The translations under genes and the position numbers were made by a program. From Macrostomum lignano (Eukaryota), in contig NIVC01002068.1 in NCBI GenBank assembly GCA_002269645.1, positions 62,001-126,000 on the forward strand: 64,000 nt of DNA, in the 5' to 3' direction. Below the pieces are notes generated by a model. That model had not been told where the DNA came from. It saw nothing but the letters and a program-made list of their open reading frames with translations, and did no database searches. The stretch's first letter is position 1. Every line of letters begins with the position of its first letter. Positions 1 to 64,000 of the stretch are shown here, piece after piece.

Positions 1-3000
1 CTGCATTCCTTTGGATGCTCAGTTACCTCTGCATTCCTATGGGTGCTCAGATACCTCTGCATTCCTTTGGATGCTCAGATACCTCTGCATTCCTATGGGT
101 GCTCAGTTACCTCTGCATTCCTATGGGTGCTCAGTTACCTCTGCATTCCTATGGGTGCTCAGATACCTCTGCATTCCTATGGGTGCTCAGTTACCTCTGC
201 ATTTCTATGGGTGCTCAGTTACCTCTGCATTCCTTTGGATGCTCAGATACCTCTGCATTCCTATGGGTGCTCAGATACCTCTGCATTCCTATGGGTGCTC
301 AGATACCTCTGCATTCCTATGGGTGCTCAGAAATCTTTTCATTCCAATGGGTGCTCAGATACCTCTGCATTCCTATGGGTGCTCAGAAATCTTTTCATTC
401 CAATGGGTGCTCAGATACCTCTGCATTCCTATGGGTGCTCAGTTACCTCTGCATTTCTATGGGTGCTCAGTTACCTCTGCATTCCTATGGGTGCTCAGAA
501 ATCTTTTCATTCCAATGGGTGCTCAGATACCTCTGCATTCCTATGGGTGCTCAGTTACCTCTGCATTCCTTTGGATGCTCAGATACCTCTGCATTCCTAT
601 GGGTGCTCAGATACCTCTGCATTCCTATGGGTGCTCAGATACCTCTGCATTCCTATGGGTGCTCAGAAATCTTTTCATTCCAATGGGTGCTCAGATACCT
701 CTGCATTCCTATGGGTGCTCAGAAATCTTTTCATTCCAATGGGTGCTCAGATACCTCTGCATTCCTATGGGTGCTCAGTTACCTCTGCATTTCTATGGGT
801 GCTCAGTTACCTCTGCATTCCTTTGGATGCTCAGATACCTCTGCATTCCTATGGGTGCTCAGATACCTCTGCATTCCTATGGGTGCTCAGTTACCTCTGC
901 ATTCCTATGGGTGCTCAGAAATCTTTTCATTCCAATGGGTGCTCAGATACCTCTGCATTCCTATGGGTGCTCAGAAATCTTTTCATTCCAATGGGTGCTC
1001 AGATATCTTTTCATTCCAATGGGTGCTCAGATATCTTTTCATTCCAATGGGTGCTCAGAAATCTTTTCATTCCTATGGGTGCTCAGAAATCTTTTCATTC
1101 CAATGGGTGCTCAGATACCTCTGCATTCCTATGGGTGCTCAGTTACCTCTGCATTCCTTTGGATGCTCAGATACCTCTGCATTCCTATGGGTGCTCAGTT
1201 ACCTCTGCATTCCTATGGGTGCTCAGTTACCTCTGCATTCCTATGGGTGCTCAGATACCTCTGCATTCCTATGGGTGCTCAGTTACCTCTGCATTTCTAT
1301 GGGTGCTCAGTTACCTCTGCATTCCTTTGGATGCTCAGATACCTCTGCATTCCTATGGGTGCTCAGATACCTCTGCATTCCTATGGGTGCTCAGTTACCT
1401 CTGCATTCCTATGGGTGCTCAGATACCTCTGCATTCCTATGGGTGCTCAGATACCTCTGCATTCCTATGGGTGCTCAGATACCTCTGCATTCCTATGGGT
1501 GCTCAGATACCTCTGCATTCCTATGGGTGCTCAGATACCTCTGCATTCCTATGGGTGCTCAGATACCTCTGCATTCCTATGGGTGCTCAGTTACCTCTGC
1601 ATTCCTATGGGTGCTCAGATACCTCTGCATTCCTATGGGTGCTCAGAAATCTCTGCATTCCTATGGGTGCTCAGTTACCTCTGCATTCCTATGGGTGCTC
1701 AGTTACCTCTGCATTCCTATGGGTGCTCAGATATCTTTTCATTCCAATGGGTGCTCAGATACCTCTGCATTCCTATGGGTGCTCAGTTACCTCTGCATTC
1801 CTATGGGTGCTCAGTTACCTCTGCATTCCTATGGGTGCTCAGTTACCTCTGCATTCCTATGGGTGCTCAGAAATCTCTGCATTCCTATGGGTGCTCAGTT
1901 ACCTCTGCATTTCTATGGGTGCTCAGTTACCTCTGCATTCCTATGGGTGCTCAGAAATCTCTGCATTCCTATGGGTACTCAGTTACCTCTGCATTCCTAT
2001 GGGTGCTCAGTTACCTCTGCATTCCTATGGGTGCTCAGTTACCTCTGCATTCCTATGGGTGCTCAGATATCTTTTCATTCCAATGGGTGCTCAGATACCT
2101 CTGCATTCCTATGGGTGCTCAGTTACCTCTGCATTTCTATGGGTGCTCAGTTACCTCTGCATTCCTTTGGGTGCTCAGTTACCTCTGCATTCCTATGGGT
2201 GCTCAGTTACCTCTGCATTCCTATGGGTGCTCAGATATCTTTTCATTCCAATGGGTGCTCAGATATATCTGCATTCCTATGGGTGCTCAGTTACCTCTGC
2301 ATTTCTATGGGTGCTCAGTTACCTCTGCATTCCTTTGGATGCTCAGATACCTCTGCATTCCTATGGGTGCTCAGATACCTCTGCATTCCTATGGGTGCTC
2401 AGTTACCTCTGCATTCCTTTGGATGCTCAGATACCTCTGCATTCCTATGGGTGCTCAGATACCTCTGCATTCCTATGGGTGCTCAGATACCTCTGCATTC
2501 CTATGGGTGCTCAGATACCTCTGCATTCCTATGGGTGCTCAGTTACCTCTGCATTCCTATGGGTGCTCAGATACCTCTGCATTCCTATGGGTGCTCAGAA
2601 ATCTCTGCATTCCTATGGGTGCTCAGTTACCTCTGCATTCCTATGGGTGCTCAGTTACCTCTGCATTCCTATGGGTGCTCAGATATCTTTTCATTCCAAT
2701 GGGTGCTCAGATACCTCTGCATTCCTATGGGTGCTCAGTTACCTCTGCATTCCTATGGGTGCTCAGTTACCTCTGCATTCCTATGGGTGCTCAGTTACCT
2801 CTGCATTCCTATGGGTGCTCAGAAATCTCTGCATTCCTATGGGTGCTCAGTTACCTCTGCATTTCTATGGGTGCTCAGTTACCTCTGCATTCCTATGGGT
2901 GCTCAGAAATCTCTGCATTCCTATGGGTACTCAGTTACCTCTGCATTCCTATGGGTGCTCAGTTACCTCTGCATTCCTATGGGTGCTCAGTTACCTCTGC

Positions 3001-6000
3001 ATTCCTATGGGTGCTCAGATATCTTTTCATTCCAATGGGTGCTCAGATACCTCTGCATTCCTATGGGTGCTCAGTTACCTCTGCATTTCTATGGGTGCTC
3101 AGTTACCTCTGCATTCCTTTGGGTGCTCAGTTACCTCTGCATTCCTATGGGTGCTCAGTTACCTCTGCATTCCTATGGGTGCTCAGATATCTTTTCATTC
3201 CAATGGGTGCTCAGATATATCTGCATTCCTATGGGTGCTCAGTTACCTCTGCATTTCTATGGGTGCTCAGTTACCTCTGCATTCCTTTGGATGCTCAGAT
3301 ACCTCTGCATTCCTATGGGTGCTCAGATACCTCTGCATTCCTATGGGTGCTCAGTTACCTCTGCATTCCTTTGGATGCTCAGATACCTCTGCATTCCTAT
3401 GGGTGCTCAGATACCTCTGCATTCCTATGGGTGCTCAGAAATCTTTTCATTCTAATGGGTGCTCAGATACCTCTGCATTTCTATGGGTGCTCAGTTACCT
3501 CTGCATTCCTTTGGATGCTCAGTTACCTCTGCATTCCTATGGGTGCTCAGATACCTCTGCATTCCTTTGGATGCTCAGATACCTCTGCATTCCTATGGGT
3601 GCTCAGTTACCTCTGCATTCCTATGGGTGCTCAGTTACCTCTGCATTCCTATGGGTGCTCAGATACCTCTGCATTCCTATGGGTGCTCAGTTACCTCTGC
3701 ATTTCTATGGGTGCTCAGTTACCTCTGCATTCCTTTGGATGCTCAGATACCTCTGCATTCCTATGGGTGCTCAGATACCTCTGCATTCCTATGGGTGCTC
3801 AGATACCTCTGCATTCCTATGGGTGCTCAGAAATCTTTTCATTCCAATGGGTGCTCAGATACCTCTGCATTCCTATGGGTGCTCAGAAATCTTTTCATTC
3901 CAATGGGTGCTCAGATACCTCTGCATTCCTATGGGTGCTCAGTTACCTCTGCATTTCTATGGGTGCTCAGTTACCTCTGCATTCCTATGGGTGCTCAGAA
4001 ATCTTTTCATTCCAATGGGTGCTCAGATACCTCTGCATTCCTATGGGTGCTCAGTTACCTCTGCATTCCTTTGGATGCTCAGATACCTCTGCATTCCTAT
4101 GGGTGCTCAGATACCTCTGCATTCCTATGGGTGCTCAGATACCTCTGCATTCCTATGGGTGCTCAGTTACCTCTGCATTCCTTTGGATGCTCAGATACCT
4201 CTGCATTCCTATGGGTGCTCAGATACCTCTGCATTCCTATGGGTGCTCAGAAATCTTTTCATTCCAATGGGTGCTCAGATACCTCTGCATTCCTATGGGT
4301 GCTCAGAAATCTTTTCATTCCAATGGGTGCTCAGATATCTTTTCATTCCAATGGGTGCTCAGATATCTTTTCATTCCAATGGGTGCTCAGAAATCTTTTC
4401 ATTCCTATGGGTGCTCAGAAATCTTTTCATTCCAATGGGTGCTCAGATACCTCTGCATTCCTATGGGTGCTCAGTTACCTCTGCATTCCTTTGGATGCTC
4501 AGATACCTCTGCATTCCTGTGGGTGCTCAGTTACCTCTGCATTCCTATGGGTGCTCAGTTACCTCTGCATTCCTATGGGTGCTCAGATACCTCTGCATTC
4601 CTATGGGTGCTCAGTTACCTCTGCATTCTATGGGTGCTCAGTTACCTCTGCATTCCTTTGGATGCTCAGATACCTCTGCATTCCTATGGGTGCTCAGTTA
4701 CCTCTGCATTCCTATGGGTGCTCAGTTACCTCTGCATTCCTATGGGTGCTCAGATACCTCTGCATTCCTATGGGTGCTCAGTTACCTCTGCATTTCTATG
4801 GGTGCTCAGTTACCTCTGCATTCCTTTGGATGCTCAGATACCTCTGCATTCCTATGGGTGCTCAGATACCTCTGCATTCCTATGGGTGCTCAGTTACCTC
4901 TGCATTCCTATGGGTGCTCAGATACCTCTGCATTCCTATGGGTGCTCAGATACCTCTGCATTCCTATGGGTGCTCAGATACCTCTGCATTCCTATGGGTG
5001 CTCAGATACCTCTGCATTCCTATGGGTGCTCAGATACCTCTGCATTCCTATGGGTGCTCAGATACCTCTGCATTCCTATGGGTGCTCAGATACCTCTGCA
5101 TTCCTATGGGTGCTCAGTTACCTCTGCATTCCTATGGGTGCTCAGATACCTCTGCATTCCTATGGGTGCTCAGAAATCTCTGCATTCCTATGGGTGCTCA
5201 GATACCTCTGCATTCCTATGGGTGCTCAGTTACCTCTGCATTCCTATGGGTGCTCAGATATCTTTTCATTCCAATGGGTGCTCAGATACCTCTGCATTCC
5301 TATGGGTGCTCAGTTACCTCTGCATTCCTATGGGTGCTCAGTTACCTCTGCATTCCTATGGGTGCTCAGTTACCTCTGCATTCCTATGGGTGCTCAGATA
5401 CCTCTGCATTCCTATGGGTGCTCAGTTACCTCTGCATTTCTATGGGTGCTCAGTTACCTCTGCATTCCTATGGGTGCTCAGAAATCTCTGCATTCCTATG
5501 GGTACTCAGTTACCTCTGCATTCCTATGGGTGCTCAGTTACCTCTGCATTCCTATGGGTGCTCAGTTACCTCTGCATTCCTATGGGTGCTCAGATATCTT
5601 TTCATTCCAATGGGTGCTCAGATACCTCTGCATTCCTATGGGTGCTCAGTTACCTCTGCATTTCTATGGGTGCTCAGTTACCTCTGCATTCCTTTGGGTG
5701 CTCAGTTACCTCTGCATTCCTATGGGTGCTCAGTTACCTCTGCATTCCTATGGGTGCTCAGATATCTTTTCATTCCAATGGGTGCTCAGATATCTCTGCA
5801 TTCCTATGGGTGCTCAGTTACCTCTGCATTTCTATGGGTGCTCAGTTACCTCTGCATTCCTTTGGATGCTCAGATACCTCTGCATTCCTATGGGTGCTCA
5901 GATACCTCTGCATTCCTATGGGTGCTCAGTTACCTCTGCATTCCTTTGGATGCTCAGATACCTCTGCATTCCTATGGGTGCTCAGATACCTCTGCATTCC

Positions 6001-7476
6001 TATGGGTGCTCAGAAATCTTTTCATTCTAATGGGTGCTCAGATACCTCTGCATTTCTATGGGTGCTCAGTTACCTCTGCATTCCTTTGGATGCTCAGTTA
6101 CCTCTGCATTCCTATGGGTGCTCAGTTACCTCTGCATTCCTTTGGATGCTCAGATACCTCTGCATTCCTATGGGTGCTCAGTTACCTCTGCATTCCTATG
6201 GGTGCTCAGTTACCTCTGCATTCCTATGGGTGCTCAGATACCTCTGCATTCCTATGGGTGCTCAGTTACCTCTGCATTTCTATGGGTGCTCAGTTACCTC
6301 TGCATTCCTTTGGATGCTCAGATACCTCTGCATTCCTATGGGTGCTCAGATACCTCTGCATTCCTATGGGTGCTCAGATACCTCTGCATTCCTATGGGTG
6401 CTCAGAAATCTTTTCATTCCAATGGGTGCTCAGATACCTCTGCATTCCTATGGGTGCTCAGAAATCTTTTCATTCCAATGGGTGCTCAGATACCTCTGCA
6501 TTCCTATGGGTGCTCAGTTACCTCTGCATTTCTATGGGTGCTCAGTTACCTCTGCATTCCTATGGGTGCTCAGAAATCTTTTCATTCCAATGGGTGCTCA
6601 GATACCTCTGCATTCCTATGGGTGCTCAGTTACCTCTGCATTCCTTTGGATGCTCAGATACCTCTGCATTCCTATGGGTGCTCAGATACCTCTGCATTCC
6701 TATGGGTGCTCAGATACCTCTGCATTCCTATGGGTGCTCAGTTACCTCTGCATTCCTTTGGATGCTCAGATACCTCTGCATTCCTATGGGTGCTCAGATA
6801 CCTCTGCATTCCTATGGGTGCTCAGAAATCTTTTCATTCCAATGGGTGCTCAGATACCTCTGCATTCCTATGGGTGCTCAGAAATCTTTTCATTCCAATG
6901 GGTGCTCAGATATCTTTTCATTCCAATGGGTGCTCAGATATCTTTTCATTCCAATGGGTGCTCAGAAATCTTTTCATTCCTATGGGTGCTCAGAAATCTT
7001 TTCATTCCAATGGGTGCTCAGATACCTCTGCATTCCTATGGGTGCTCAGTTACCTCTGCATTCCTTTGGATGCTCAGATACCTCTGCATTCCTGTGGGTG
7101 CTCAGTTACCTCTGCATTCCTATGGGTGCTCAGTTACCTCTGCATTCCTATGGGTGCTCAGATACCTCTGCATTCCTATGGGTGCTCAGTTACCTCTGCA
7201 TTTCTATGGGTGCTCAGTTACCTCTGCATTCCTTTGGATGCTCAGATACCTCTGCATTCCTATGGGTGCTCAGATACCTCTGCATTCCTATGGGTGCTCA
7301 GTTACCTCTGCATTCCTATGGGTGCTCAGATACCTCTGCATTCCTATGGGTGCTCAGATACCTCTGCATTCCTATGGGTGCTCAGATACCTCTGCATTCC
7401 TATGGGTGCTCAGATACCTCTGCATTCCTATGGGTGCTCAGATATCTTTTCATTCCAATGGGTGCTCAGATATCTT
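1..7476. repeat. 28-bp satellite array (~265 monomers, runs off the left edge) with higher-order repeats
   Basis: Consensus CTGCATTCCTATGGGTGCTCAG(A/T)TACCT, with recurrent variants (TTTGGA, TTTCATTCCAATGGG, GAAATCT). Rare variants recur at 952 bp (34 monomers) and 2575 bp (92 monomers minus 1 nt). The array ends abruptly at ~7476. Confidence 0.98.
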
Positions 7477-28424: not shown

Positions 28425-29408
<984 letters not shown>

Positions 29409-47836: not shown

Positions 47837-50800
47837 TCAGCTGGCCCCCTGCTGGCTCAGGTACTTCGTCACCAACGAGTCGGCGTACTTTCTAGCGCTG
47901 GCGGTCAGCTCCCGAGCCTCGGCGTAGTCGCGAAGATGATTCCAGCGGGTGTCACTTCTGCGAGCAGTGACAGATCATTGGAGTGACAGATCATTAGAGT
48001 GACAGATCATTGGAGTGACAGATCATTGGAGTGACAGATCATTGGAGTGACAGATCATTGGAGTGACAGATCATTGGAGTGACAGATCATTGGAGTGACA
48101 GATCATTGGAGTGACAGATCATTGGAGTGACAGATCATTGGAGTGACAGATCATTAGAGTGACAGATCATTGGAGTGACAGATCATTGGAGTGACAGATC
48201 ATTGGAGTGACAGATCATTGGAGTGACAGATCATTGGAGTGACAGATCATTGGAGTGACAGATCATTGGAGTGACAGATCATTGGAGTGACAGATCATTG
48301 GAGTGACAGATCATTGGAGTGACAGATCATTGGAGTGACAGATCATTGGAGTGACAGATCATTGGAGTGACAGATCATTGGAGTGACAGATCATTGGAGT
48401 GACGGATCATTGGAGTGACAGAATACTAGAGTGAAAGATCATTGGAGTGACAGATTACCTGAGTGACAGGTGACAGATATCAGAGGGACAGATTATTAGA
48501 GTGACAGATGGCTGGCTAACGCAGCGGCCTCACCTCCCAGTCTCGCCGCCAGCCCCCGACTCCAGAGACAGTCTAGGGACGGCGCTCGATGTCGCGCTCC
48601 CGACGGCAGCGCCGGCGCCGCTGCGGAACGAGTTCATGGCCTCGAGACCTTGCAGGATGTTCGTCATGGACGAGGCTGCGCTGCGCCTTGGCTGCTGCAG
48701 CTGCTGAGCTGCCGGCGGCCGCCACGAGGGCTGCGGATTTTGTGGCGCCGCGGTTGACGAAGCCATCGCCGGCACCGACGGCGACGCAGCTGTCGACGCG
48801 GCGGCGAGTCGCTTAATTTCCGACGAATGAGCGTCGCGAAATTCGGCCCGAAGTCGTTCGACAATGCTGCCGCCACTGCCGCCGGCTCCAAAACTTCCGG
48901 TTCGAATTGGTCGGCGAATCTGCGGCTGTTGTCGACTTTGAAAAACCGACTGTTGTGTCTGCTGCTGCTGCTGCTTCTGCTGCTGCAATTGCTGAAGCCG
49001 CTGAATTGGCACCGGCCGCAGTTGCCGCCGGCGGGACTCCGACATCGGCTGCTGTTGCTGCTGCTGCTGCTGCGGTTTTGGCGTTGCTGGCGGCGTCTGC
49101 ATCCGCGTCAGGAAGCCGCGCACCCTGTCGGAGATTTGCTCGTCCTCGGCGCTGCGCTGCAGCCGGGGCGCCGGAGGCGGCGTTGTGGGCTGCGGCTGCT
49201 GCTTCTGACGCGGCGGTGGCGGCGGTGGCTGTGTCGCAGGGGGCGCCGGTTCATAGGCCGCAGTCGATGGCTTCGCCGAGGTTCCGGTAATGCTCATCTA
49301 AAATTGCGTAGCTCCGACATTATTTGAAACAATTAGTAATATGTTTTTAATAAGATTCAACTTAAATCAGCTGCCAAATGGTAGCATTGTTAAAAAATGT
49401 TAGATAAATAGGACTTGAACCTGTTACAGAAAATCAAAATGTGTAAGACATGTTAGACAGTATCTTAACACTGTTAGACAGAGTCGGGAACTGTCAGACA
49501 GAATCGGCAACTGTTAGACAGGATAGGCAACTGTTAGACAATATCTGTAACTGTTAGACAGGATAGGCAACTGTTAGATAGTATCTGTAACTGTTAGACA
49601 GGATCTGTAACTGTTAGACAGGATAGGCAACTGTTAGACAGTATCTGTAACTGTTAGACAGGATCTGTAACTGTTAGACAGGGTCAGAAAAGTTCCCCAG
49701 CAAGTTATTAAAAGCAGAAATTCAACACATTCTCAAACCTCCAGCGCCCGCTGCAGCCTGCTCGGCCCCGCAGTGGTTCTGCATGCTGGCTGCTCAACCG
49801 CGGCCACTCTTGGCGTCGTCATTGTCGATGCGGTCGCCGTGGTCGTCGGCAGCTTCGTGGGCGCGGCGAAATTGACGGCGGCGGCAGCGACGGCCGCTGC
49901 CTGCTGACTGCCGACCAGATGCTGATTGGCCACCTCCCTGCGGAGCCGCATCAGCTCGGTCTCCAGCGCCACCAGCTGCTGTCCCAACCGTCCAGCCTCC
50001 TGACGCTCCATCGCGCCGGCCTGAACGCTGAGCGACGTCTCCCGCATCTGCTGAGCGAGGCGACCGTTCTCCGACTGCATCGACTGCAGCTGCCGCTCCA
50101 GGCCGGCCAGGCGGCCCTCCAGGCCGCGCATCTCCAGCTCGTCGCATTCGATCTTGGATTTGAGCTCCAGGTTCTCCCGGCGGGTGGCCTCGAGCACCTG
50201 CCGGTCCTCCTCCATCACCAGCTTCAGCTCGCTCGCCTGAAATAAAGAATTTGGCGGATTTTCGTTGCGCGGCTTTGAAAAATTGATTTTGTGAAATCTT
50301 GTGACACTTTGATCTTGTGACACTTTGATCTTGTGACACTTTGATCTTGTGACACTTTGATCTTGTGACACTTTGATCTTGTGACACTTTGATCTTGTGA
50401 CACTTTGATCTTGTGACACTTTGATCTTGTGACACTTTGATCTTGTGACACTTTGATCTTGTGACACTTTGATCTTGTGACACTTTGATCTTGTGACACT
50501 TTGATCTTGTGACACTTTGATCTTGTGACACTTTGATCTTGTGACACTTTGATCTTGTGACACTTTGATCTTGTGACACTTTGATCTTGTGACACTTTGA
50601 TCTTGTGACACTTTGATCTTGTGACACTTTGATCTTGTGACACTTTGATCTTGTGACACTTTGACACTTTGATCTTGTGACACTTTGATCTTGTGACACT
50701 TTGATCTTGTGACACTTTGATCTTGTGACACTTTGATCTTGTGACACTTTGATCTTGTGACACTTTGATCTTGTGACACTTTGATCTTGTGACACTTTGA

Positions 50801-53012
50801 TCGTGTGAACCTTTGAACCGGGGATTTTCGAATGGTGGCTACTGCCTGCTTTTAAATCAAAGCCCTCAAAGCTGCATATGTAAAAGCGCAAGCAGACTCA
50901 GACCCTACCTGAAAGTCGCCTTTCTCCACGGCAACCATAAGGTCGCTCTTGGTTTGCTCGTTTAGACGCCTCAGCAAGTCGAGCTGGTCGGCCATGGCCT
51001 GCACCTCTCGCTGCTTCTCGTACAGCTGGAAATGGGATTTGGGATCAGTACTGAGATTGGGATTTGGGATTAGGGATCAGAACTGAGATCGGGATTTGGG
51101 ATCAGAACTGACATTGGGATTTAGGATTTAGGATCAGTACTGGAATTGGGATTGGAATCGGGATTGGGATCAAGGTATAGAATTATGACATTGGACTCGG
51201 CATACATGTTAACTATTAAAACTTGAGTATTGAGAACCTGCAGCGCGTGACCCAGCTGGAACTCCAGTCGCTTGTCGCTTGATTAGTGTGAACTCATTTT
51301 TAAAGCTACCCCTCACTCCTGGTCTCACTAGGTGCTCACATTTTCATTGAGTTGTCGGCACTCCTCTCTCAGTTGAGTCTCCAGCTGCCGCTGGTTCGAC
51401 ATCTCCTTGAGCCGTTCGACCTCTTCCTCGCGCTGTGCCGCCCAGCGGGCCCGGACCTCTCGCAGCATGGAGCCCGGCTGCTGCTGCCGGCGCTGCAAGC
51501 CGACATCATCGAAGTCGTCCTGGGATCCGACGCCCGGATCGTAGCACGGATCGTCCTCGAAGAAGATTCCGCCGTCTCTGAGGACTGCCTCATCATTGAA
51601 GCCGTTGCTGCCGTCCCCGCCGCGATAATCGTAGGCGGCGTCGTCTGCAGGATAAGCGGACACCGGGGCGGAGGCCGCCGCCTCTCGGTAATAGTAGCGA
51701 TTGTAGTCATCCACGTCATTCTCGACAGCGGCTGGTGGCGGAGGTGCTGCAGTCTGCGGAGCGGACAGGGATCTTATTTGCGGCAGTGGCTATTTTAAGC
51801 CTGTTATTTCGATTTATAGATCTGTTAACAATAGATGCTCGAATAATATACATTTCTTTTATCCGTAAAGTTTTGATTCTATAGGAGTCAAAAAAGTCCT
51901 CAAAAAGTTGTAAAATCTTTGCGTAAGCAAAAAAGGAAAAAATGCAATCTCCGCCGTGCTTTTGCTCCAGAAAACTGTGGAGAAGGTTTCCTTGAAGTAG
52001 AGTAAAGCTTTTCGGGTAGGAGAGTAGATTTCGATCGCTTTCGAGGAAATATGAAAGGTTTCCAGGAAACAGAATAGGTTTTCCGGAAAGAGAATAGATT
52101 TCCTGGAAACAATAATAGGTTTCCAGGAAATGGAATAGGTTTCCAGGAAATGGAATAGGTTTCCAGGAAATGGAATAGGTTTCCAGGAAATGGAATAGGT
52201 TTCCAGGAAATGGAATAGGTTTCCAGGAAATGGAATAGGTTTCCAGGAAATGGAATAGGTTTCCAGGAAATAGAATAGGTTTCCAGGAAATGGAATAGGT
52301 TTCCAGGAAATAGAATAGGTTTCCAGGAAATGGAACAGGTTTCCAGGAAATGGAATAGGTTCCTAAATTAATTTCTAGAAAATGAAATAGATTACTAGGA
52401 AATTAATCAGGTTTCCAAGAAATGGAATAGTTTTCCTGGAAAAGGAATAGTTTTCCAGGAAATAGAGTACGTTTCTATGAAACGGTATCGGCTTCCAGGC
52501 CTATATTATGCGGATTGGATGGCTACAAAGAACGGTGAGACAGCATCAGCAGGTACCTGATAAGTCGTCAAGCTGCTCCGCACTCTGGCGATCAGGTCAA
52601 GCGTTGACGGCTGTCGCTGATCTTCGTCGCCAATCGCCGACGACGCAACTGAAGCTTTGCCTGTCGCCTTCTCGACTGGCGCTGCAGCCGCCGCCGCCGC
52701 CGGCAGCTTTTCGATCGAGCCGCCGCTGGCAGTTGGCCGCTTCTGCCGGCTGCCGCCGAAAGCAATGCGGCGCAGCTGTTCCTGAAACGACAGCTCAGCC
52801 GTTGGTGCGTCAGGTTTCTTTGTTGCAGACTGCGACTGCGCTGGCGGCGGCGGCTGCTGCTCCGCTCTGGTTGGCCTCGGCGGAGGCGGTGGCGTCGGCG
52901 GCTGCTGCTGCGGGAACTCCAAGCAGCCGCTGTCGTCCGGCTCATCCTGATCGACTTCGTCCGCTGGCTCGGAGTCCAGTCGCAGGCGCAGCTCGCTGAC
53001 TCTGGACGCCAT
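47837..53012 (-). CDS. Six-exon, 789-aa low-complexity / coiled-coil protein of unknown family
   Basis: Exons 53012-52557, 51753-51340, 51025-50909, 50236-49739, 49297-48534 and 47957-47837. All introns are GT-AG with consistent phases (0,0,0,0,2). Central heptad-rich coil (EEEVERLKEM...LETELMRLRREV); C-terminus WNHLRDYAEARELTASARKYADSLVTKYLSQQGAS*. Confidence 0.85.
47967..48450. repeat. 16-bp minisatellite in intron 5 of the coiled-coil gene
   Basis: Unit GTGACAGATCATTGGA. Confidence 0.97.
49460..49682. repeat. 20-bp minisatellite in intron 4
   Basis: Units AACTGTTAGACAGGATAGGC / AACTGTTAGACAGTATCTGT. Confidence 0.9.
50296..50802. repeat. 16-bp minisatellite in intron 3
   Basis: Unit GATCTTGTGACACTTT. 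Confidence 0.97.
51033..51172. repeat. Degenerate GGGATT-based repeat in intron 2
   Basis: Repeated GGGATTTGGGATCAG(T/A)ACTGAGAT motifs. Confidence 0.75.
52055..52470. repeat. 20-bp minisatellite in intron 1
   Basis: Unit GGAATAGGTTTCCAGGAAAT. Confidence 0.95.
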
Positions 53013-54369: not shown

Positions 54370-54782
54370 AACCTAAAAACAGACTTTCTAATTCCTAGAA
54401 ACAGACTTTCTAATTCCTAGAAACAGCCTTTCTGATTCCTAGAAACAGTCTTTCTGATTCCTAAAAACAGACTTTCTAATTCCTAGAAACAGCCTTTCTG
54501 ATTCCTAGAAACAGACTTTCTGATTCCTAAAAACAGACTTTCTGATTCCTAGAAACAGTCTTTCTGATTCCTAGAAACAGACTTTCTGATTCCTAAAAAC
54601 AGACTTTCTGATTCCTAGAAACAGTCTTTCTGATTCCTAGAAACAGACTTTCTGATTCCTAGAAACAGACTTTAGGATTCCTAGAAACAGACTTTCTGAT
54701 TCCTAGAAACAGTCTTTCTGATTCCTAGAAACAGACTTTCTGATTCCTAGAAACAGATTTTCTAAATCTATTCCTAGAAACT
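54370..54782. repeat. 22-bp minisatellite
   Basis: Unit TTCCTAGAAACAGACTTTCTGA (period checked at 54481/54503). Confidence 0.95.
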
Positions 54783-55234
54783 GACAAGCACTGAAGAAAA
54801 ATACCTTTTTGTGCGAGATGTTCAACACAGCAATTGGTATGTATGCAATTCACGCCCATTAGGGCCAACCCCTTTATAACACAGAGAGTGTACATGCCTT
54901 GCGAATAGAAAAGTCAGGAACGCTGGAAACCCTGTTTGTGTGCCCCTGAGTACGTATAAACTGCGTGAATGTGTGTGCTCAAGTTTAGCAAAATTATAAA
55001 ATATAAAAAGGAAAGCGAGTAACTGGCTTAAGTCTGTGGCTAGGCTTCCCTATGTCGGGATCTGGTTGCTGTATGCTGTATAGTCTATGGCTTTTGCTTG
55101 GCTTGGCCAGGCTTATTCAGTCAGCCAAGCTGAGAGCGCAGCAGCAGTGCAGCGATCAACCAAGCTCGCTCAAGGCCTCACCGCACCGCTAGACTACTGA
55201 CTTAGGTAACACTGACAGCTTAACCAAAGCCGGC

Positions 55235-56821
55235 ATGCAGGAGATTATCACCATCCACATTGGTCAGTGCGGCGTCTGCGTCGGGCTCAAGTACTGGGAG
55301 AGCCTGGCCGACGAGCACGGCCTGGACTGTCAGGGCCGGTTTGTTGGCTCCAGCCCGTTGCAGCTTGAAAAGATCGGCGTGAACTTTGCGGAGTCGCAGT
55401 CGGGCCGGCACTCGCCCAGAGCTGTGTTCGCCGATCTGGACTCCACCAGCGTGGCCGCCCTGTCCGCCAGCTCCTGCACCGGCCTGTTCCGGCCGGACAG
55501 CCTCATTGAAGGCACCGGGGAGGCCGCCAGCACATACGGGCGCGGCTACGACTCACCCGGAGCCAAGGCGATGGCCGAGTCAATTCTGACCTCCGTTCAG
55601 CGACAGCTCGAGCTGAGCGATCGAGTCCGCGCGGTTCACATCGTCCACAGCCTGGGCGGCGGCACCGGCTCCGGCCTGACCAGCCGCCTGCTCCAGCAGG
55701 GACTGTCCGGCGTCCCTGTGCACACCTTCAGCCTGTTCCCCGGCCAGCCGGCCATCATCGAGGCTTACAACGCCACCCTGTGCGCGCCGCACCTGGCCAG
55801 CAGTGCCGAGATCACCTACTGCTGGGACTTGGCCGGCCTGCGCGCGGCCAGCGAACGTCCAAAGCCGGACATTGAAGACGTGAACCGGACAGCGGCCAAC
55901 ATGATGCTGGGCCTGACTGCCTGCGTCCGGTTTCCTGGACAGCTAAACCTCAGTCCGGGCAAACTGGCCAGCGCGCTGGTGCCCCTGCCCAGGTGAGAAC
56001 TCGTTTGAGAGAAATTTGAGTTCAGAATGGAGACTCAATATTAGCATTGGCTGGCATTGTAGTTAAGATTGTATAGGTGTAATTCGAACTCCTTAAAGGT
56101 AAGGATTGGTTTCTGAATCCACGCTTGTACGCTTCGTCAGCTCTTCTCCCCCTCGGTTTTACGCTCGAAGTTTCACTTAGCTCCAATAAAGAAATTCTCT
56201 CCGCGTTCGTCTCTCGCTAATCTAAGTATTGAATATATTAGACATCGAAAGCTGAAATTCTACAGGTTACTAAAGATTAAGGTGCTTTCAAGGTGCTCAA
56301 AGGCTGATTAACAGTGTCGGACTCGTTTCCGCAGGCTGCACTTCCTGTTGTCCTCGCTGGGCTGGGGCTCCACGCACGGCAACTCGGTCCGTGAGCTCTC
56401 TGCTCGGATGCTGAGCCCGGAGGCGCAGCTGGCGGCCTGCGACCCCTCGGCGGGCCGCATCCTCTCAGCGGCCGGCATCTTCCGCGGCCGGGTGCCAATC
56501 CAGGCGCTGGACTCAGCGCTCACCGACCTTCGGGCGCGTCGCGAGGCCGTCTTTCCCAATTGGCTGACTCACGCCTTCTCAACCGGCGTCTGCGACATTC
56601 CGCCGCGCGGCGAGACCGTCTCGGCGGCTTTCTTTGTCAACTCGAGCTCCACAGCTAACCTGGTTGAGCAGCAAGCTACCCAGGTGCGCAAACTGTTTGC
56701 CAGCGGGAGGGCCTTCTTCCACCTGTACCAGCAGGAGGGCATCACCGAGGGCGACATGAGCGAAGCTCTGGACGAGTGCGACCGGCTGTGCAGTCTCTAC
56801 CGCGAGACCGCGACTGCCTGA
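55235..56821 (+). CDS. Highly divergent beta-type tubulin lacking the acidic C-terminal tail (exons 55235-55992 and 56335-56821; 414 aa)
   Basis: Tubulin signature HSLGGGTGSG plus GQCG, DEHG, PRAV, FRPD, YNATL, RFPGQLN, VPLPR|LHF, AACDP, FRGR and the beta-specific CDIPPRG. Phase-2 GT-AG intron. The protein ends at YRETATA*. Confidence 0.9.
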
Positions 56822-57162
56822 GCCGCGCACCCAGCGCATAATTTTGTTTAAAACAGGGTATGAAAACTAAAAAAGTCTGGCTGAGTTGGGTAAATTTGGA
56901 TGCAAAGCGTCATCTGGAGTAAAACAATAGACGGCTCAAAGCAGAGAGCGAAACGCTCCATTCGTTTCTTTTTCAATTTTCAAACTGTTTTCTCCGCGTT
57001 TAGTCTTTTATTTGACAATACTGGTGGTCTTGCCAGGAAAAGAGCTGCTGAATAACGTGAACTTGTCTAATGACTTGTCCAATGGGCACTTAAGGAGCAT
57101 CTTTACCAATGGGGAGAACTATCAACAGAACCAAAGACATCTTTATGAGTGAGAGGACATTT

Positions 57163-57641
57163 CCAACAGTTTGGGAACATGTCTAACAGCAGTTTGGGAA
57201 CATGTCCAACAGTTGGAGAGCATGTCTAACAGTTTGGGGACATGTCTAACAGTTTGGGAACACGTACAACAGTTCAGGAACATGTCTAACAGTTTAGGAA
57301 CATGTCTAACAGTTTGGGAACATGTCTAACAGCTGGCGAACATTTACAACAATTTGGGGATATCTTCAAAAGTTTGGGAACATGTCCAACAGTTTGGGAA
57401 CATGTCTAACAGTTTGGGAACATGTCTAACAGTTTGGGAACATGTCTAACAGTTTGGGAACATGTCTAACAGTTTGGGAACATGTCTAACAGTTTGGGAA
57501 CATGTCCAACAGTTTGGGAACATGTCTAACAGTTTGGGAACATGTCTAACAGTTTGGGAACATGTCTAACAGTTTGGGAACATGTCCAACAGTTTTGGAA
57601 CATGTCCAACAGTTTTGGAACATGTCCAACAGTTTGGGAAC
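57163..57641. repeat. 20-bp minisatellite
   Basis: Unit AACAGTTTGGGAACATGTC(T/C). Confidence 0.95.
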
Positions 57642-58449: not shown

Positions 58450-61400
58450 TCAGATATCTGGCTGCTGGCTGTCGCACTGCGCCTTGTAGCGCAGCAGGCA
58501 CTGCGCCAGGAACTCGATCGGGTCCACGGGCCTCGCGTTCGCTACCTCGGCCATTGAGCTGGCCAGTGCTGGCTCTGGAATGAGAAAATGGGGGGATTTT
58601 GTAGTGCTCAACGTGTTCCATAGGGTAAAGACTCTCAAGACACCGCTCTCTGAGGAGGCTGGAAACACCGCCTTCTGAGCAGGACTCTGAAGACAATACT
58701 CTGGGAGAAGGACCCAGAAGACACCACTGTGGGAAGGACTTTGGGGACACCAATGTGGGAAGGACCCTGAAGACACCACTCTCTGGGAAGGAATGAAGGA
58801 ATCTGAAGGCACAATGTATGATTATCAAGAGGTCACGATTCACACACAACTGCCATAGCGTCGAGGCCGGTAGGCCGAGACGCGGTAAGGCAGTTGTGTG
58901 TGAAGCGTGAACTCTCGATAGTGGAATTGTGTCTAGTTTCGTCCAAAAACCAATTCAAAATGGCTAGGACACAACTTCCCAGACGGGAATTGTTCACTGA
59001 GTGATTCTAGGGATTTGTGTCATAGGCATTTTCCACTTGGCGCAAGCCAGATGATGGCCATAGACTAATCGTCTGGAACGAAAAGTTAAGCGGAACAGTC
59101 TGAAATTACCATAGACGAAACATGTTAAATGAAGTTGTGGTCTTATAAGCTGGAACCAGGGACAACTAAAACCCTCGGGACGCGAAACGAGCCAATTCAT
59201 GGCAAAAAATCTGAGGGGCTCGCTTAAAAGTATTGTTCTATGGCTTTTTCAAGTCTTCTCTGCTATCAGGCAAATTAAAATTGCTTTAGCTGCGGCCAGC
59301 AGTGAAGCTAAGCTGAACTATATCAAGAGAAGCATTTTTTATTCACTTGATGAAATGCCAAGAAAGTGCAGCGTATTTCCGTGCTCGTCAAATTACAACT
59401 CTGAAGCCGTTCGAACACGGACATTTGCGTTTCCCAGAGATCCACAGGAGCGAGAGCGATGGAGAAAGGCGCTGCCAAATATTCTCCAGGTAAGAAACCA
59501 GATCATTTGCTGTCATTACTGCTGCATAATTCCGCTTCAATTCTGCATGCCAGTCTCGTCCAAACAACTTGAAACCCAAAATTTATTATTTTAGAGAGTG
59601 ACTGACAATATGGGCGTGTGCGTAAAGCATTGGCCAAGCGATGCTCCAATGTTCAAGAAAAACTCTACCAAAAGGCCAATTAATCCTCCTTCTGTTTTTA
59701 ATGGAGTTCCTAGCTCGTGTTTTGTTCAGAACCAAGGTACGTAACTTAAAGATTGCTCAACACTTAGCGTCTATATCGATTTTGCCGCTCACAATTATCT
59801 TACTTTTATTTTTACTCTTATTTTAGACCAGGACCGACAGGCCGAAAAGCGCGGTGTTCTTTCTGACGCGAGGTGCAGCGACATCGATGAGATGGACGCT
59901 TTTCAGCTGCTTGATTTTTTGCCGGCATGGGAAAGTTTTCGAGCTGAGGTGAAAAAATTCGGATGTCGTATCTCGACATGCACTGAATACAGCTATTCTG
60001 AACGAAGATGTTTACTTGTTTACGTTAGATAAAGATGGAGACCTGTCTGTTCGAATTTTTGTCTCACCTAACTTTCTGATTCGTGCATTCAAACTGCATA
60101 CACCGATTTCGGTTCGAGACTTGTTGGGATTTCAACCGACACTCAAGCGCTCGTCAAAAAAAAATCCCACCAATACCGACGACATCCCATGATAGAAAGC
60201 TTCGGAAGTTAGATTTCCGAAGAACTTTCGAAGCTTTCTATCATGGGATGTCGTCGGTATTGGTGGGATTTTTGACGAGCGTCTTACTAGTCCTTTGAAA
60301 AAAACGTTGGCTAGCCGACGGGACACACTGTCCATGCTGAACGCTGGCTGGAATGCTCGTCTCTGATATCAAATCTGTTCCTTTGATGCCTGCCTTCTTT
60401 AGTCGCTGTATAACCTGTCAATTTCCAATAAAGCACGGTTTGAATTGTTTTTATGAGATTGTGTAAAACCTCGTGAATTAAATTTTAATTAATATCCAGC
60501 TTACCTGCGATATAGTAGAGCGAAGCCATCTCCGAAATGGAAAGCTCCTCTGATTTAGCAGCACAATTATCAATGGTCGCCAGTTCAATTTCATTCAGCT
60601 GTTCATTGCAACATTTGCTCCGATCGTGCTTGTAGTCTGCTAATTCAAGGGATGCCAATAATTTCATTCGTCGGAGTCGAGCACTGAGCAGCACTTGCTC
60701 CACAGATACATAGTAGTTGCCGCCGCTCATTTGGCGATATACGCCAGCCAGCCAGCCAGAACGTAGCTGATTCGTGGGTCGGACAAAAGAACCTCACACA
60801 TCTCACAGGCTCCGCGCAGTGAGTTTACTAGCGCTGACTTGGTCTCGGGCGTCAATGAATGATGGCGAGCTCGGCCTTTTCCACAATGTGTCGAATCAAA
60901 CGAATCCGCGAGCGCGCTAAGAAATTGTATGCTTTCATCTTGAACGGAATAGACTGGTCGCCTGTCCGGATCCCGTAGTCGTGCGTGTAGATCAGGATTT
61001 TTACAATTGACAATTTTCCAGAATCTCACTATGGTTTTGATAAATTCCGCAGTGTCTGAGTATCCATCACACTTCAATGCAGCGGCAACCCTTTCATCGA
61101 GAACTTGAAGAGCGAGACTGACTTTAGTTTTCTGAGTGCTTGTGGGATAACAGGCCTCATGAGTTAGACATGTGCGCTTGACTACGTGGTCTTTCTCCAT
61201 TTGGTACAGGCGTACCACGTCTGACCATTTAGCGGATATCTGTCTGTCAGCGCCAGGAGGTTGAATGCTTAGAATTCCATTCGCTTCCATTTGCCAATTG
61301 TTGCGAATGCATTTGATAATGTGAACGAAATCGAACAGCATGAAGAATTCCGACTCCTGTGCAGCATCCGTTCCAATCCATGGCTTCTCTCTTCCATCGC

Positions 61401-64000
61401 TAAATAAAGCAAAACACTTGCGGTTGGTAGGTTGATTGTCGCTGACGAGAGCAACGACACGGCCACCGTTGTTGTTAATTGCTTTAATACATTGGCTGAC
61501 GCATTTTCGCAGAAACTCCGCAGACAAAATGTATGTCGGCAATAGTCGGACTACAAACGGTTTTCCACCAAGTAATGGCTTTACCATTATGGCCAAAATT
61601 GTCCTAGCAACCTGGTCCGGATCGTCGACGGCTCGACCCAGGTGACGGCATCGATATCGAACGGACGGTTGTATGTACATTTCGTCAAACATATTACGCA
61701 GTTTCGCTGAGCTCCTGATAGACTAGCAAAAACTGACTGGATCACATCGACTGCGTCGGTTTCTGTGCCAACTTCTCCTGTACCTGCTAGTTGCAGCTGC
61801 AGCGTTCGGGGATGAGGCAATGGCAATAGCTTCCGTAGGTAAGAGTAAGCCGAACTACTGATCAAGTAGAGCAATGCTGACTGTCGCACTAGTGAAATGT
61901 CATAGCGGCGATTGTTCCGATTTACTAATGTAAGGCTAAGTTGTCGAATCAAAAACTGAAGCGACCGATCCAAATCAGAGTCAGAATCTATATCATCACT
62001 GATTCTACTAACAAACGCTTCGACTTCACGTTGGGGATTGGCGTCGGAATTTTTGCACCGCACGACAACAGCATCCAGTTGCGACCAGCGCTTGAGTGTC
62101 GGTTGAAATCCCAACAAGTCTCGAACCGAAATCGGTGTATGCAGTTTGAATGCACGAATCAGAAAGTTAGGTGAGACAAAAATTCGAACAGACAGGTCTC
62201 CATCTTTATCTAACGTAAACAAGTAAACATCTTCGTTCAGAATAGCTGTATTCAGTGCATGTCGAGATACGACATCCGAATTTTTTCACCTCAGCTCGAA
62301 AACTTTCCCATGCCGGCAAAAAATCAAGCAGCTGAAAAGCGTCCATCTCATCGATGTCGCTGCACCTCGCGTCAGAAAGAACACCGCGCTTTTCGGCCTG
62401 TCGGTCCTGGTCTAAAATAAGAGTAAAAATAAAAGTAAGATAATTGTGAGCGGCAAAATCGATATAGACGCTAAGTGTTGAGCAATCTTTAAGTTACGTA
62501 CCTTGGTTCTGAACAAAACACGAGCTAGGAACTCCATTAAAAACAGAAGGAGGATTAATTGGCCTTTTGGTAGAGTTTTTCTTGAACATTGGAGCATCGC
62601 TTGGCCAATGCTTTACGCACACGCCCATATTGTCAGTCACTCTCTAAAATAATAAATTTTGGGTTTCAAGTTGTTTGGACGAGACTGGCATGCAGAATTG
62701 AAGCGGAATTATGCAGCAGTAATGACAGCAAATGATCTGGTTTCTTACCTGGAGAATATTTGGCAGCGCCTTTCTCCATCGCTCTCGCTCCTGTGGATCT
62801 CTGGGAAACGCAAATGTCCGTGTTCGAACGGCTTCAGAGTTGTAATTTGACGAGCACGGAAATACGCTGCACTTTCTTGGCATTTCATCAAGTGAATAAA
62901 AAATGCTTCTCTTGATATAGTTCAGCTTAGCTTCACTGCTGGCCGCAGCTAAAGCAATTTTAATTTGCCTGATAGCAGAGAAGACTTGAAAAAGCCATAG
63001 AACAATACTTTTAAGCGAGCCCCTCAGATTTTTTGCCATGAATTGGCTCGTTTCGCGTCCCGAGGGTTTTAGTTGTCCCTGGTTGTATTGAATAAAAAAT
63101 ATCCTCACAAACGCATTGATACAGGAATATACAGATTGCTTTTCTGCAAATGGGTATATCCAAATATAACCCGTTGGGAATATCCAAAGATGGGGGGCGG
63201 CTTGACCATGGACTATTCGCAGATAAGCAATCCCTGTTTCGATGCCTGAAAGGCGCGCAAAAATTTACTTAGTTCACAATTTCCGTCGACGCAATCGTTT
63301 GTGGCCCAAACGAAACTAGACACAATACTGAGGATTCTGAAAATCCCACTGGGATGAAATATTAAAATAAAATCAGTAATTTCCCTCAGCGAAGAATCCC
63401 AACTTCAATTAAGCCTTCCGGAATACATCTAGGGCAATAACGCTTATTAACTACCACGTATTAAGATGTAATCAACAACCCCTTGAATCTCACTCAGCAT
63501 GTCCAGGTATTCCGGTCTTGGACCAGGTGCTTTCGCCGGCGAACCTACACTCGAGTCTACATTCGCCGTTGCATCGATCGCCTTCATCGAGTGCATCTGG
63601 GCAGCTCCATCAGCAGCAACTAGCGGTTGCGGGTCGTGAAGCTCAAACAGCATGATTGGTGCGTTATGCGTCAGCACCAGCAGGTCCCGACCATCTTCCC
63701 CAACCAAGCAGAGTCCGAAAGGATCCGACTCAAACAGGTAGTTTGCAACGCGGCGTCCATCACTGATTACATAGACCTGGAGTGCAGAAATTAAACGCAG
63801 TCATTGAGAAAAGGCATCTTTAGATCGGATTCTTATAAGCGTAAGCATTAAAAGATTTGCCATTCCCTATAACAATCGTTGCTAATCTTACCTGCAAGCC
63901 TCGAGGTGGAACAATTGCGAACAGGTCCGAACTGTTCATGGATTCGTCATCGAATACGGCGAACTCCACCTCGTAGGCGGGAAAGTACACCTGGCCAACA
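58450..64000 (-). CDS. 3' part of a second NWD-type STAND paralogue (exons >64000-63892 and 63776-63494, plus predicted last exon 58574-58450 encoding a Dpy-30-like motif)
   Basis: 64000-63892 matches 41005-41113 with 2 mismatches in 109 nt, and the next exon is homologous to exon 6 of copy 1. Phase-1 donor GTGAGA at 63493 and phase-1 acceptor TTCCAG at 58575 give EYLDMLKPALASSMAEVANARPVDPIEFLAQCLLRY. The last-exon link is a prediction. Confidence 0.75.
58821..58922. other. ~100-nt long-stem hairpin (tiny MITE or pre-miRNA-like)
   Basis: 34-bp arms with 4 mismatches (core TTCACACACAACTGCC / GGCAGTTGTGTGTGAA) and an inner GCGTC-GGCC stem. Confidence 0.55.
59154..60151 (+). repeat. Inverted copy of the transposon 5' kilobase (upstream region, THAP exons, start of exon 3)
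   Basis: Reverse complement of 62087-63084, both 998 bp. THAP ATG at 59355 mirrors 62883. Confidence 0.95.
60148..60281. repeat. Near-perfect palindrome at the junction of the inverted duplication
   Basis: CGCTCGTCAAAAA..ATCCCACCAATACCGACGACATCCCATGATAGAAAGCTTCG and its reverse complement flank a ~24-nt loop. The arms differ only in A/T-run length. Confidence 0.93.
60290..62883 (-). pseudogene. THAP + P-element (THAP9-like) transposase pseudogene
   Basis: THAP C2CH finger (MPRKCSVFPC...W...CVKHW...PSVF) split by GT-AG introns. Core motifs AYSYLRKLLPLPHPRTL, FDEM, DNQPTN, FDFVHIIKCIRNNW, KVSLALQV, YRQMSGGNYY, YYIAG|Y. Frameshifts near 62283, 61688 and 60745; 3' end truncated at the 60148-60281 hairpin. 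Confidence 0.9.

Follow-up and report, generated by a model that had tools for sequence, protein, structure and literature searches.

Beta-tubulin is among the most conserved of eukaryotic proteins, and its C-terminal tail, its M-loop and the residues of its exchangeable nucleotide site (E-site) are treated as nearly untouchable. A gene of the flatworm Macrostomum lignano, located at positions 55235-56821 (forward strand) of the 64,000-nucleotide stretch analysed here (the window; positions 62,001 to 126,000 of contig NIVC01002068.1), encodes a tubulin in which all three are altered or missing, and raises the question of whether such a protein is still a beta-tubulin, whether it is maintained, and what it might do. 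The gene has two exons, a single GT..AG intron and a 414-residue product that, judged from its sequence, is an extreme beta-tubulin derivative lacking the acidic tail. Comparison with an orthologue from a related species shows that it has been under purifying selection since the two species split.

A remodelled beta-tubulin without an acidic tail

The product contains both tubulin domains of Pfam, PF00091 Tubulin (3.4e-32, 112.7 bits, gathering cut-off 33) and PF03953 Tubulin_C (5.3e-17, 62.6 bits, gathering cut-off 26.6), and is collinear with canonical beta-tubulin over residues 1-410. A phmmer search without filters against 1.84 billion representative proteins returns beta-motif proteins at 265-280 bits and alpha-tubulins at ~170 bits. 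Class references covered alpha, beta, gamma, delta and epsilon; BLASTP gives 260-278 bits and 35-37% identity with canonical beta, 131 bits and 27% with human gamma-tubulin (a reference matching PDB 7qj0_U at 100%), 99 bits and 24% with epsilon, and <50 bits and ~21% with delta, the epsilon and delta references being unvalidated. In a neighbour-joining tree of 30 taxa the beta-tubulins and the M. lignano protein are monophyletic in 89.5% of 200 bootstraps, and the epsilon and delta references fall outside that clade. An earlier note on this locus, made from the nucleotide sequence without database searches, had read the protein as a beta-tubulin, had named placement in delta, epsilon or zeta as a refutation and had proposed a tubulin phylogeny as a check; the bit scores and the tree, with zeta absent from the references, place it inside the beta family.

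The best 60 sequence matches in PDB (~1e-80) are all beta chains, as are the best Foldseek PDB matches (TM 0.85-0.89, template modelling score) of an AlphaFold2 model with a mean pLDDT (predicted local distance difference test) of 80 and a predicted TM score (pTM) of 0.86. Since PDB has no epsilon-tubulin, and the epsilon reference also matches beta best (275 bits), a best PDB match to beta is not decisive by itself. Membership of another tubulin family (delta, epsilon, zeta, gamma or alpha) might be suggested by the low raw identity to beta, and by the EIITI start and the PRLHFL motif, which resemble gamma too, but it is made improbable in the extreme by the fall in bit scores from beta to alpha, gamma, epsilon and delta (the last two against unvalidated references), by the monophyly with beta, and by the beta characters CDIPPRG and K252. 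A lysine at H8 position 252 (254 in 1JFF numbering) is characteristic of beta, with a catalytic glutamate in its place in alpha.

NCBIfam has no tubulin sub-family models, and a library protein starting MPRE (P0156), tried as a gamma reference, proved to be a divergent beta. Two further proteins, P0148 and P0202, joined the M. lignano protein in the first neighbour-joining tree; this was treated as long-branch attraction and they were rejected as kin. P0202 is from the protist Apiculatamorpha, and P0148 is a Logan sequence found on compact gene-dense contigs from unrelated runs.

The remodelling was examined in a 77-sequence alignment of the protein, its orthologue and 75 canonical beta-tubulins, with residues assigned to nucleotide contacts and loops by reference to the 1JFF structure, whose numbering was changed to that of native beta. 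The N-terminus reads MQEI for canonical MREI (55235-55246; MHEI in the orthologue). The T3 loop is GEAASTYGRG for canonical SGAGNNWAKG (55517-55546), replacing the gamma-phosphate contact N99 by serine, and the orthologue has GEAASNFGRG. The T4 tubulin signature GGGTGSG, the phosphate-binding loop, is kept at 7/7 residues in both proteins (55655-55675). The H4-S5 loop and the T5 loop are each three residues shorter (55700-55765; PSPKVSDTVVE becomes PG---QPAIIE), with the same deletions in the orthologue. From T6/H6 into the H6-H7 loop (55826-55876) DNEAL becomes DLAGL (N204L), four residues are deleted and Y222 is replaced by isoleucine, so that two guanine-base contacts are lost. T7/H8 is GQLNLSPGK for GQLNADLRK (55937-55963), keeping N247 and the beta-type K252 and replacing D249 by serine.

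In the C-terminal half, strand S7 leads into a shortened M-loop, LSSLGWGSTHGN------SV (56348-56389), from which six residues are gone in both orthologues, including the lateral-contact residues Y281 and R282. The beta-specific motif CDIPPRG (56591-56611) is exactly kept and the FPGQ.N motif is also retained. The chain ends in LYRETATA (YRETATA and the stop codon at 56798-56821) at the point where canonical chains run on into the acidic tail; the last helix of the AlphaFold2 model, H12 (391-413), reaches the chain end and no disordered tail follows.

The first exon (55235-55992) comprises codons 1-252 and the first 2 nt of codon 253, that is, the N-terminal nucleotide-binding domain through T7/H8. 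The sole intron (55993-56334; 342 nt, GTGAGA...CCGCAG, phase 2, 41% GC) splits codon 253, the arginine of PLPR|LHF, and the second exon (56335-56821) carries codons 253-414 and a TGA stop at 56819-56821. The spliced coding sequence (CDS) is 1245 nt long and has no internal stops.

Most of these features had been described in the earlier note, and the alignment bears its description out: the substitutions at MREI, T3, DNEAL and T7 (GQLNAD to GQLNLS) are all present, as are the shortening of the M-loop by six residues and of the H4-H5 region (by three in H4-S5), the retention of GGGTGSG, CDIPPRG and the T7-adjacent lysine K252, the end of the chain at YRETATA, and the open frame with clean splice sites. 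To that list can be added one extra residue where H3 begins, the four-residue H6/H6-H7 deletion and the replacement of six nucleotide contacts described below. Chance resemblance is excluded, since the exact protein is already deposited (PAA61122.1) and the orthologue has the same derived features.

Orthologue, selection and origin of the paralogue

The sole orthologue found (P0002) is a 415-residue protein, 74% identical in protein and 73% in nucleotides, present on two independent Logan contigs (L001 and L002) from runs SRR30276812 and SRR30276804. These contigs are spliced transcripts of a related species, as indicated by their identical coding sequence, 5' ends no more than 2 nt apart, an open reading frame (ORF) unbroken across the M. 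lignano intron site, and a 134-nt 3' untranslated region (UTR) ending in AATAAA. The orthologue has the derived states MHEI, GEAASNFGRG, CWDLNGL and GQQNLSPAK together with all four deletions, keeps CDIPPRG and K252, and is tail-less as well, ending in LYADTVKA and a stop. Conservation among canonical beta-tubulins reaches 90% or more in 252 alignment columns; of these, 107 are canonical in both orthologues and 98 have the identical derived residue in both; 28 are changed differently in the two, and 19 are canonical in one only.

By the Nei-Gojobori method the two coding sequences differ with a dN (nonsynonymous divergence) of 0.19, a dS (synonymous divergence) of 1.08 and a ratio omega of 0.18 (bootstrap 95% interval 0.13-0.24). 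Omega is <0.36 in every 60-codon window, with similar constraint along the whole chain, and a maximum-likelihood estimate is 0.04. With dS close to saturation and a bias in codon usage, 0.18 is probably an overestimate of the true omega. The earlier note had named a dN/dS near 1 as evidence against its reading; the value found reflects purifying selection instead.

Three near-identical M. lignano copies are present in the assembly. The copy described here, g1, is accompanied by g3 on NIVC01002707.1, which differs by one residue (A320V) and, within the intron, by one single-nucleotide polymorphism and an indel of 7 bp; its neighbouring genes on both sides are the same. Copy g2 on NIVC01002705.1 is 99.8% identical, with three substitutions and a frame broken by two 1-base deletions in GGG runs, at the equivalents of window positions 55296 and 56532; it is annotated as PAA55804.1, of just 217 residues. 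In a long-read assembly such 1-base losses in GGG runs are probably assembly errors rather than the mark of a dead copy. Several near-identical tubulin copies are consistent with a published chromosome duplication in DV1, the M. lignano line that was sequenced (PMC5730564).

A further UniRef protein, A0A1I8JF64 (P0123), was considered as a second orthologue at 83% identity and rejected. This 818-residue 'Tubulin domain-containing protein', from an older M. lignano assembly, is a frameshifted chimera built on the same gene: an unrelated N-terminus is followed by an antisense translation of the tubulin gene and then by a frameshifted forward copy. The model has the look of an artefact of annotation or assembly, although an inverted duplicate in the older assembly is also possible.

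Extreme divergence and the frameshifts in g2 and in A0A1I8JF64 are what a decaying duplicate, a pseudogene or an annotation artefact might present. However, g1, g3 and the orthologue all have an open frame, the g2 frameshifts are probably sequencing errors, the upper bound of omega is 0.24, the orthologue is represented by spliced transcripts, and the M. lignano gene has an intron and is not a processed copy; decay or artefact is therefore very improbable.

In the tree, the two orthologues share a very long branch that arises close to the base of the beta clade, next to other long-branch beta-likes. Taken at face value this would suit an ancient tubulin lineage that split early from beta and was lost elsewhere, and the same could be said of the identity to beta, which at 35-37% is below the alpha-beta level of 40% (the protein is 35% identical to insect beta-1, and fungal alpha-tubulins are 40% identical to the same sequence). 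A canonical beta gene of M. lignano, Mlig024742, is interrupted after codons 19 and 174 by short introns, neither of which is in the divergent gene, and just 3/33 residues specific to that canonical paralogue are present in the divergent protein. Nonetheless, a basal position beside unrelated long-branch sequences is typical of, and expected from, long-branch attraction, the unaltered beta motifs are in keeping with a derived beta, and no relative between 37% and 74% identity was found in other organisms by phmmer among the 1.84 billion representatives, nor did a profile search add any. We consider an ancient separate lineage unlikely on these grounds. The lack of an intermediate relative elsewhere favours a lineage-specific duplicate that would have diverged fast and then come under constraint, and as far as current data show the lineage appears confined to Macrostomum or close relatives.

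Nucleotide site, interfaces and possible function

What such a protein might do depends in the first place on its nucleotide site. Q11, C12, D67, S138, the T4 loop, E181 and N226 are kept, and six conserved E-site contacts are changed (N14V, Q15C, N99S, D177P, N204L and Y222I). The least retained loops of the M. lignano protein are T3 (22% of conserved residues) and T5 (20%), which form the plus-end longitudinal face. The changed loops are themselves conserved between the orthologues (T3 80%, H4-S5 100%), and the beta-type minus-end characters are kept, namely N247 and K252 in place of a catalytic glutamate.

We lean, by a modest degree, towards the view that the gene encodes a specialised functional beta subunit, which would pair with an alpha-tubulin and build or cap non-canonical polymers free of tail modification. 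The protein would act as the beta partner of alpha-tubulin through its beta-type minus-end face. Lacking a tail, it could carry neither polyglutamate nor polyglycine chains (glutamylation and glycylation), and would be bound more weakly by tail-dependent motors, microtubule-associated proteins (MAPs) and severing enzymes. Deletion of the M-loop contact residues, together with the rebuilt T3 and T5, would set its lateral and plus-end longitudinal contacts apart from those of the standard lattice, from which a non-canonical polymer is inferred; the protein might form, stiffen, stabilise or cap such a polymer, which would probably be stable and non-dynamic, rather than contribute to ordinary dynamic microtubules. 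The earlier note had also suggested altered lattice contacts, and the changes to the M-loop, T3 and T5 make this a reasonable reading. The start of the chain may matter at a different level. MREI is the nascent-chain motif recognised by TTC5 (PMC10403363), and because Arg2 is lost, with glutamine or histidine at position 2, the mRNA would be expected to escape autoregulation, provided that the pathway exists in flatworms.

A number of observations weigh against a polymer-forming subunit. With half of the E-site nucleotide contacts changed, normal GTP binding and exchange are in doubt, and the protein may bind, exchange or hydrolyse the nucleotide abnormally or not at all. H10 keeps just 17% of conserved residues and D249 is replaced, which alters the intradimer face, so that pairing with canonical alpha is not assured. 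The selection estimate carries the near-saturated dS described above, and interface-specific conservation is not resolvable from two orthologous sequences. The gene identifier was not found by full-text search, nor in the supplements of four M. lignano papers (PMC5816591, PMC7336406, PMC12896417 and PMC5730564), with file 2 of PMC5816591 covered in part.

The same changes can be read as those of a non-polymerising tubulin-like regulator, one that might cap plus ends, sequester alpha-tubulin or tubulin cofactors, or serve as a scaffold unconnected with microtubules. Loss of the guanine contacts N204 and Y222, of the gamma-phosphate contact N99 and of the N14/Q15 contacts, poor retention of the plus-end loops T3 and T5 and deletion of the M-loop lateral contact element would all be in keeping with such a role, and conservation of the changed loops between orthologues points to a new constrained function, not decay. 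This is possible but the less probable of the two, given that T4, Q11, C12, D67, S138, E181 and N226 are kept, that the beta-specific CDIPPRG and K252 are kept, and that constraint extends over the whole chain, as expected of a subunit packed on all sides.

In keeping with a functional subunit, the Mlig_3_7 gene set was built from RNA-seq (RNA sequencing) transcripts (PMC5730564), by which transcription of the gene in M. lignano is indirectly implied. Action in the germline or in sperm, the latter an example offered in the earlier note, is a guess by analogy with divergent beta-tubulins of other animals that are restricted to the testis. Macrostomum sperm are not known to have an axoneme, and if they lack one a tubulin free of tail modification might be more tolerable there. 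In Drosophila the most divergent beta paralogues are reported to be testis-specific, betaTub65B being an uncharacterised divergent testis paralogue (bioRxiv 10.1101/185827), and reproduction-related genes of Macrostomum are reported to evolve fast (PMC7336406). A more detailed proposal, that this is a private Macrostomum tail-less beta-like tubulin, exempt from autoregulation and with a degenerate GTP pocket, which builds a modification-free non-canonical polymer with a canonical or co-diverged alpha, with the sperm cortical arrays or bristle apparatus as one candidate site, is correspondingly tentative and, taken as a whole, rather doubtful.

The function question is directly testable because RNA interference and transgenesis are established in M. 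lignano (PMC7053086, PMC5730564). A protein that still assembles would show which of the 'essential' features of tubulin are dispensable and would be a naturally occurring tubulin without tail modification; one that no longer assembles would represent the tubulin fold in a new use. Should the modification-free polymer prove real, the gene would amount to a natural experiment on how much of its nucleotide site, M-loop and tail a beta-tubulin can lose and still assemble.

Genomic setting and comparison with known tubulins

In assembly GCA_002269645.1 (Mlig_3_7) the gene is annotated on this contig as Mlig034252.g1 with identical bounds, and its product is deposited as PAA61122.1, 'hypothetical protein BOX15_Mlig034252g1 [Macrostomum lignano]', under the UniRef name 'Tubulin beta chain'; a tblastn search of that protein against the window gives 100% identity. 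No papers mentioning gene Mlig034252 were found by full-text search. The coding sequence has a GC content of 66%, and 84% at third codon positions (GC3), in a window of 45.6% GC overall; GC3 is similar, at 79%, in a canonical beta-tubulin gene of the same genome, and the GC-rich third positions account for the numerous antisense ORFs at the locus. A second tubulin copy is not present within the 64-kb window.

The flanking sequence offers little that is shared with the orthologue. The 5' UTR shows marginal similarity between window positions 55137-55182 (~55-100 nt upstream of the ATG) and contig L002 of the orthologue, with a score of 28 against no more than 24 in 100 shuffles, and 3' UTR conservation between M. 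lignano and the orthologue is absent. In M. lignano the 500 nt that follow the stop codon contain neither AATAAA nor ATTAAA.

The window is crowded with minisatellites, including a 28-mer repeated ~267 times at 1-7472, ~1 kb of (ATCT)n at 28425-29408 and ~20 further arrays, which are responsible for its strong composition skews; a 22-mer and a 20-mer array lie close to the tubulin gene on either side (54372-54763 and 57157-57641). The neighbouring gene at 47837-53012 (reverse strand) encodes a 789-residue protein with no Pfam match, and that at 58450-64000+ (reverse strand) a 2025-residue NACHT/AAA_16/WHD_NWD1 protein with a weak Dpy-30 motif, an NWD1-like STAND NTPase. Neither has an evident link to the tubulin gene.

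Divergent tubulins as such are common in databases. The representative library contains 5876 tubulin-like matches at E <=0.001, many of them full-length and 30-45% identical to canonical beta; the divergent ones (P0124-P0268 in the match list) are mostly metagenome and protist-transcriptome sequences and form a large uncharted set. A divergent paralogue alone is thus no surprise, as many highly divergent beta-like tubulins are already on record.

Canonical beta-tubulins (the TUBB family, M. lignano Mlig024742 and Mlig011676, and PDB 6tiu_B and 1jff_B) share with the M. lignano protein the two Pfam domains, the fold (TM 0.85-0.89), GGGTGSG, CDIPPRG, FPGQ.N and K252. They differ from it in an identity of only 35-37%, the presence of a tail, MREI rather than MQEI, an unmodified T3 and other intron positions, and in lacking its deletions of three residues in H4-S5, three in T5, four in H6/H6-H7 and six in the M-loop and its replacements of N14, Q15, N99, D177, N204 and Y222.

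The nearest parallel in kind is Drosophila betaTub65B (CG32396), which is likewise a lineage-restricted, highly divergent extra beta paralogue with no assigned function. The library protein P0257 is a probable betaTub65B-type representative, identified only by its N-terminus. It is 36% identical to the M. lignano protein, no closer than other betas, and has a non-canonical C-terminal extension (...SPDDYEEKAATSGHCSFCTD) where the latter has nothing beyond H12.

Chicken c-beta-6, TUBB1 and class V beta, which stand for the haematopoietic and other divergent vertebrate isotypes, are described as having specialised polymer properties and still co-assembling with alpha (PMC2114845, PMC3069006). The fish beta-1 representative is 84% identical to insect beta-1, in comparison with 35% for the flatworm protein. 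Divergent vertebrate isotypes are ~80% identical to other beta isotypes, and have acidic tails and intact GTP-site residues.

Subtilisin-cleaved tubulin, like the M. lignano protein, has no acidic tail. Its critical concentration is lowered, and its interactions with tail-dependent motors, MAPs and severing enzymes are weaker. It is nevertheless a product of proteolysis in vitro and is otherwise canonical, whereas the tail loss described here is encoded by the gene and accompanied by many other changes. Among these systems the M. lignano gene, already deposited and unstudied, is an extreme form of lineage-specific divergent beta-tubulin paralogue, without the tail, six M-loop residues and half of the nucleotide contacts, yet maintained by selection in at least two species.

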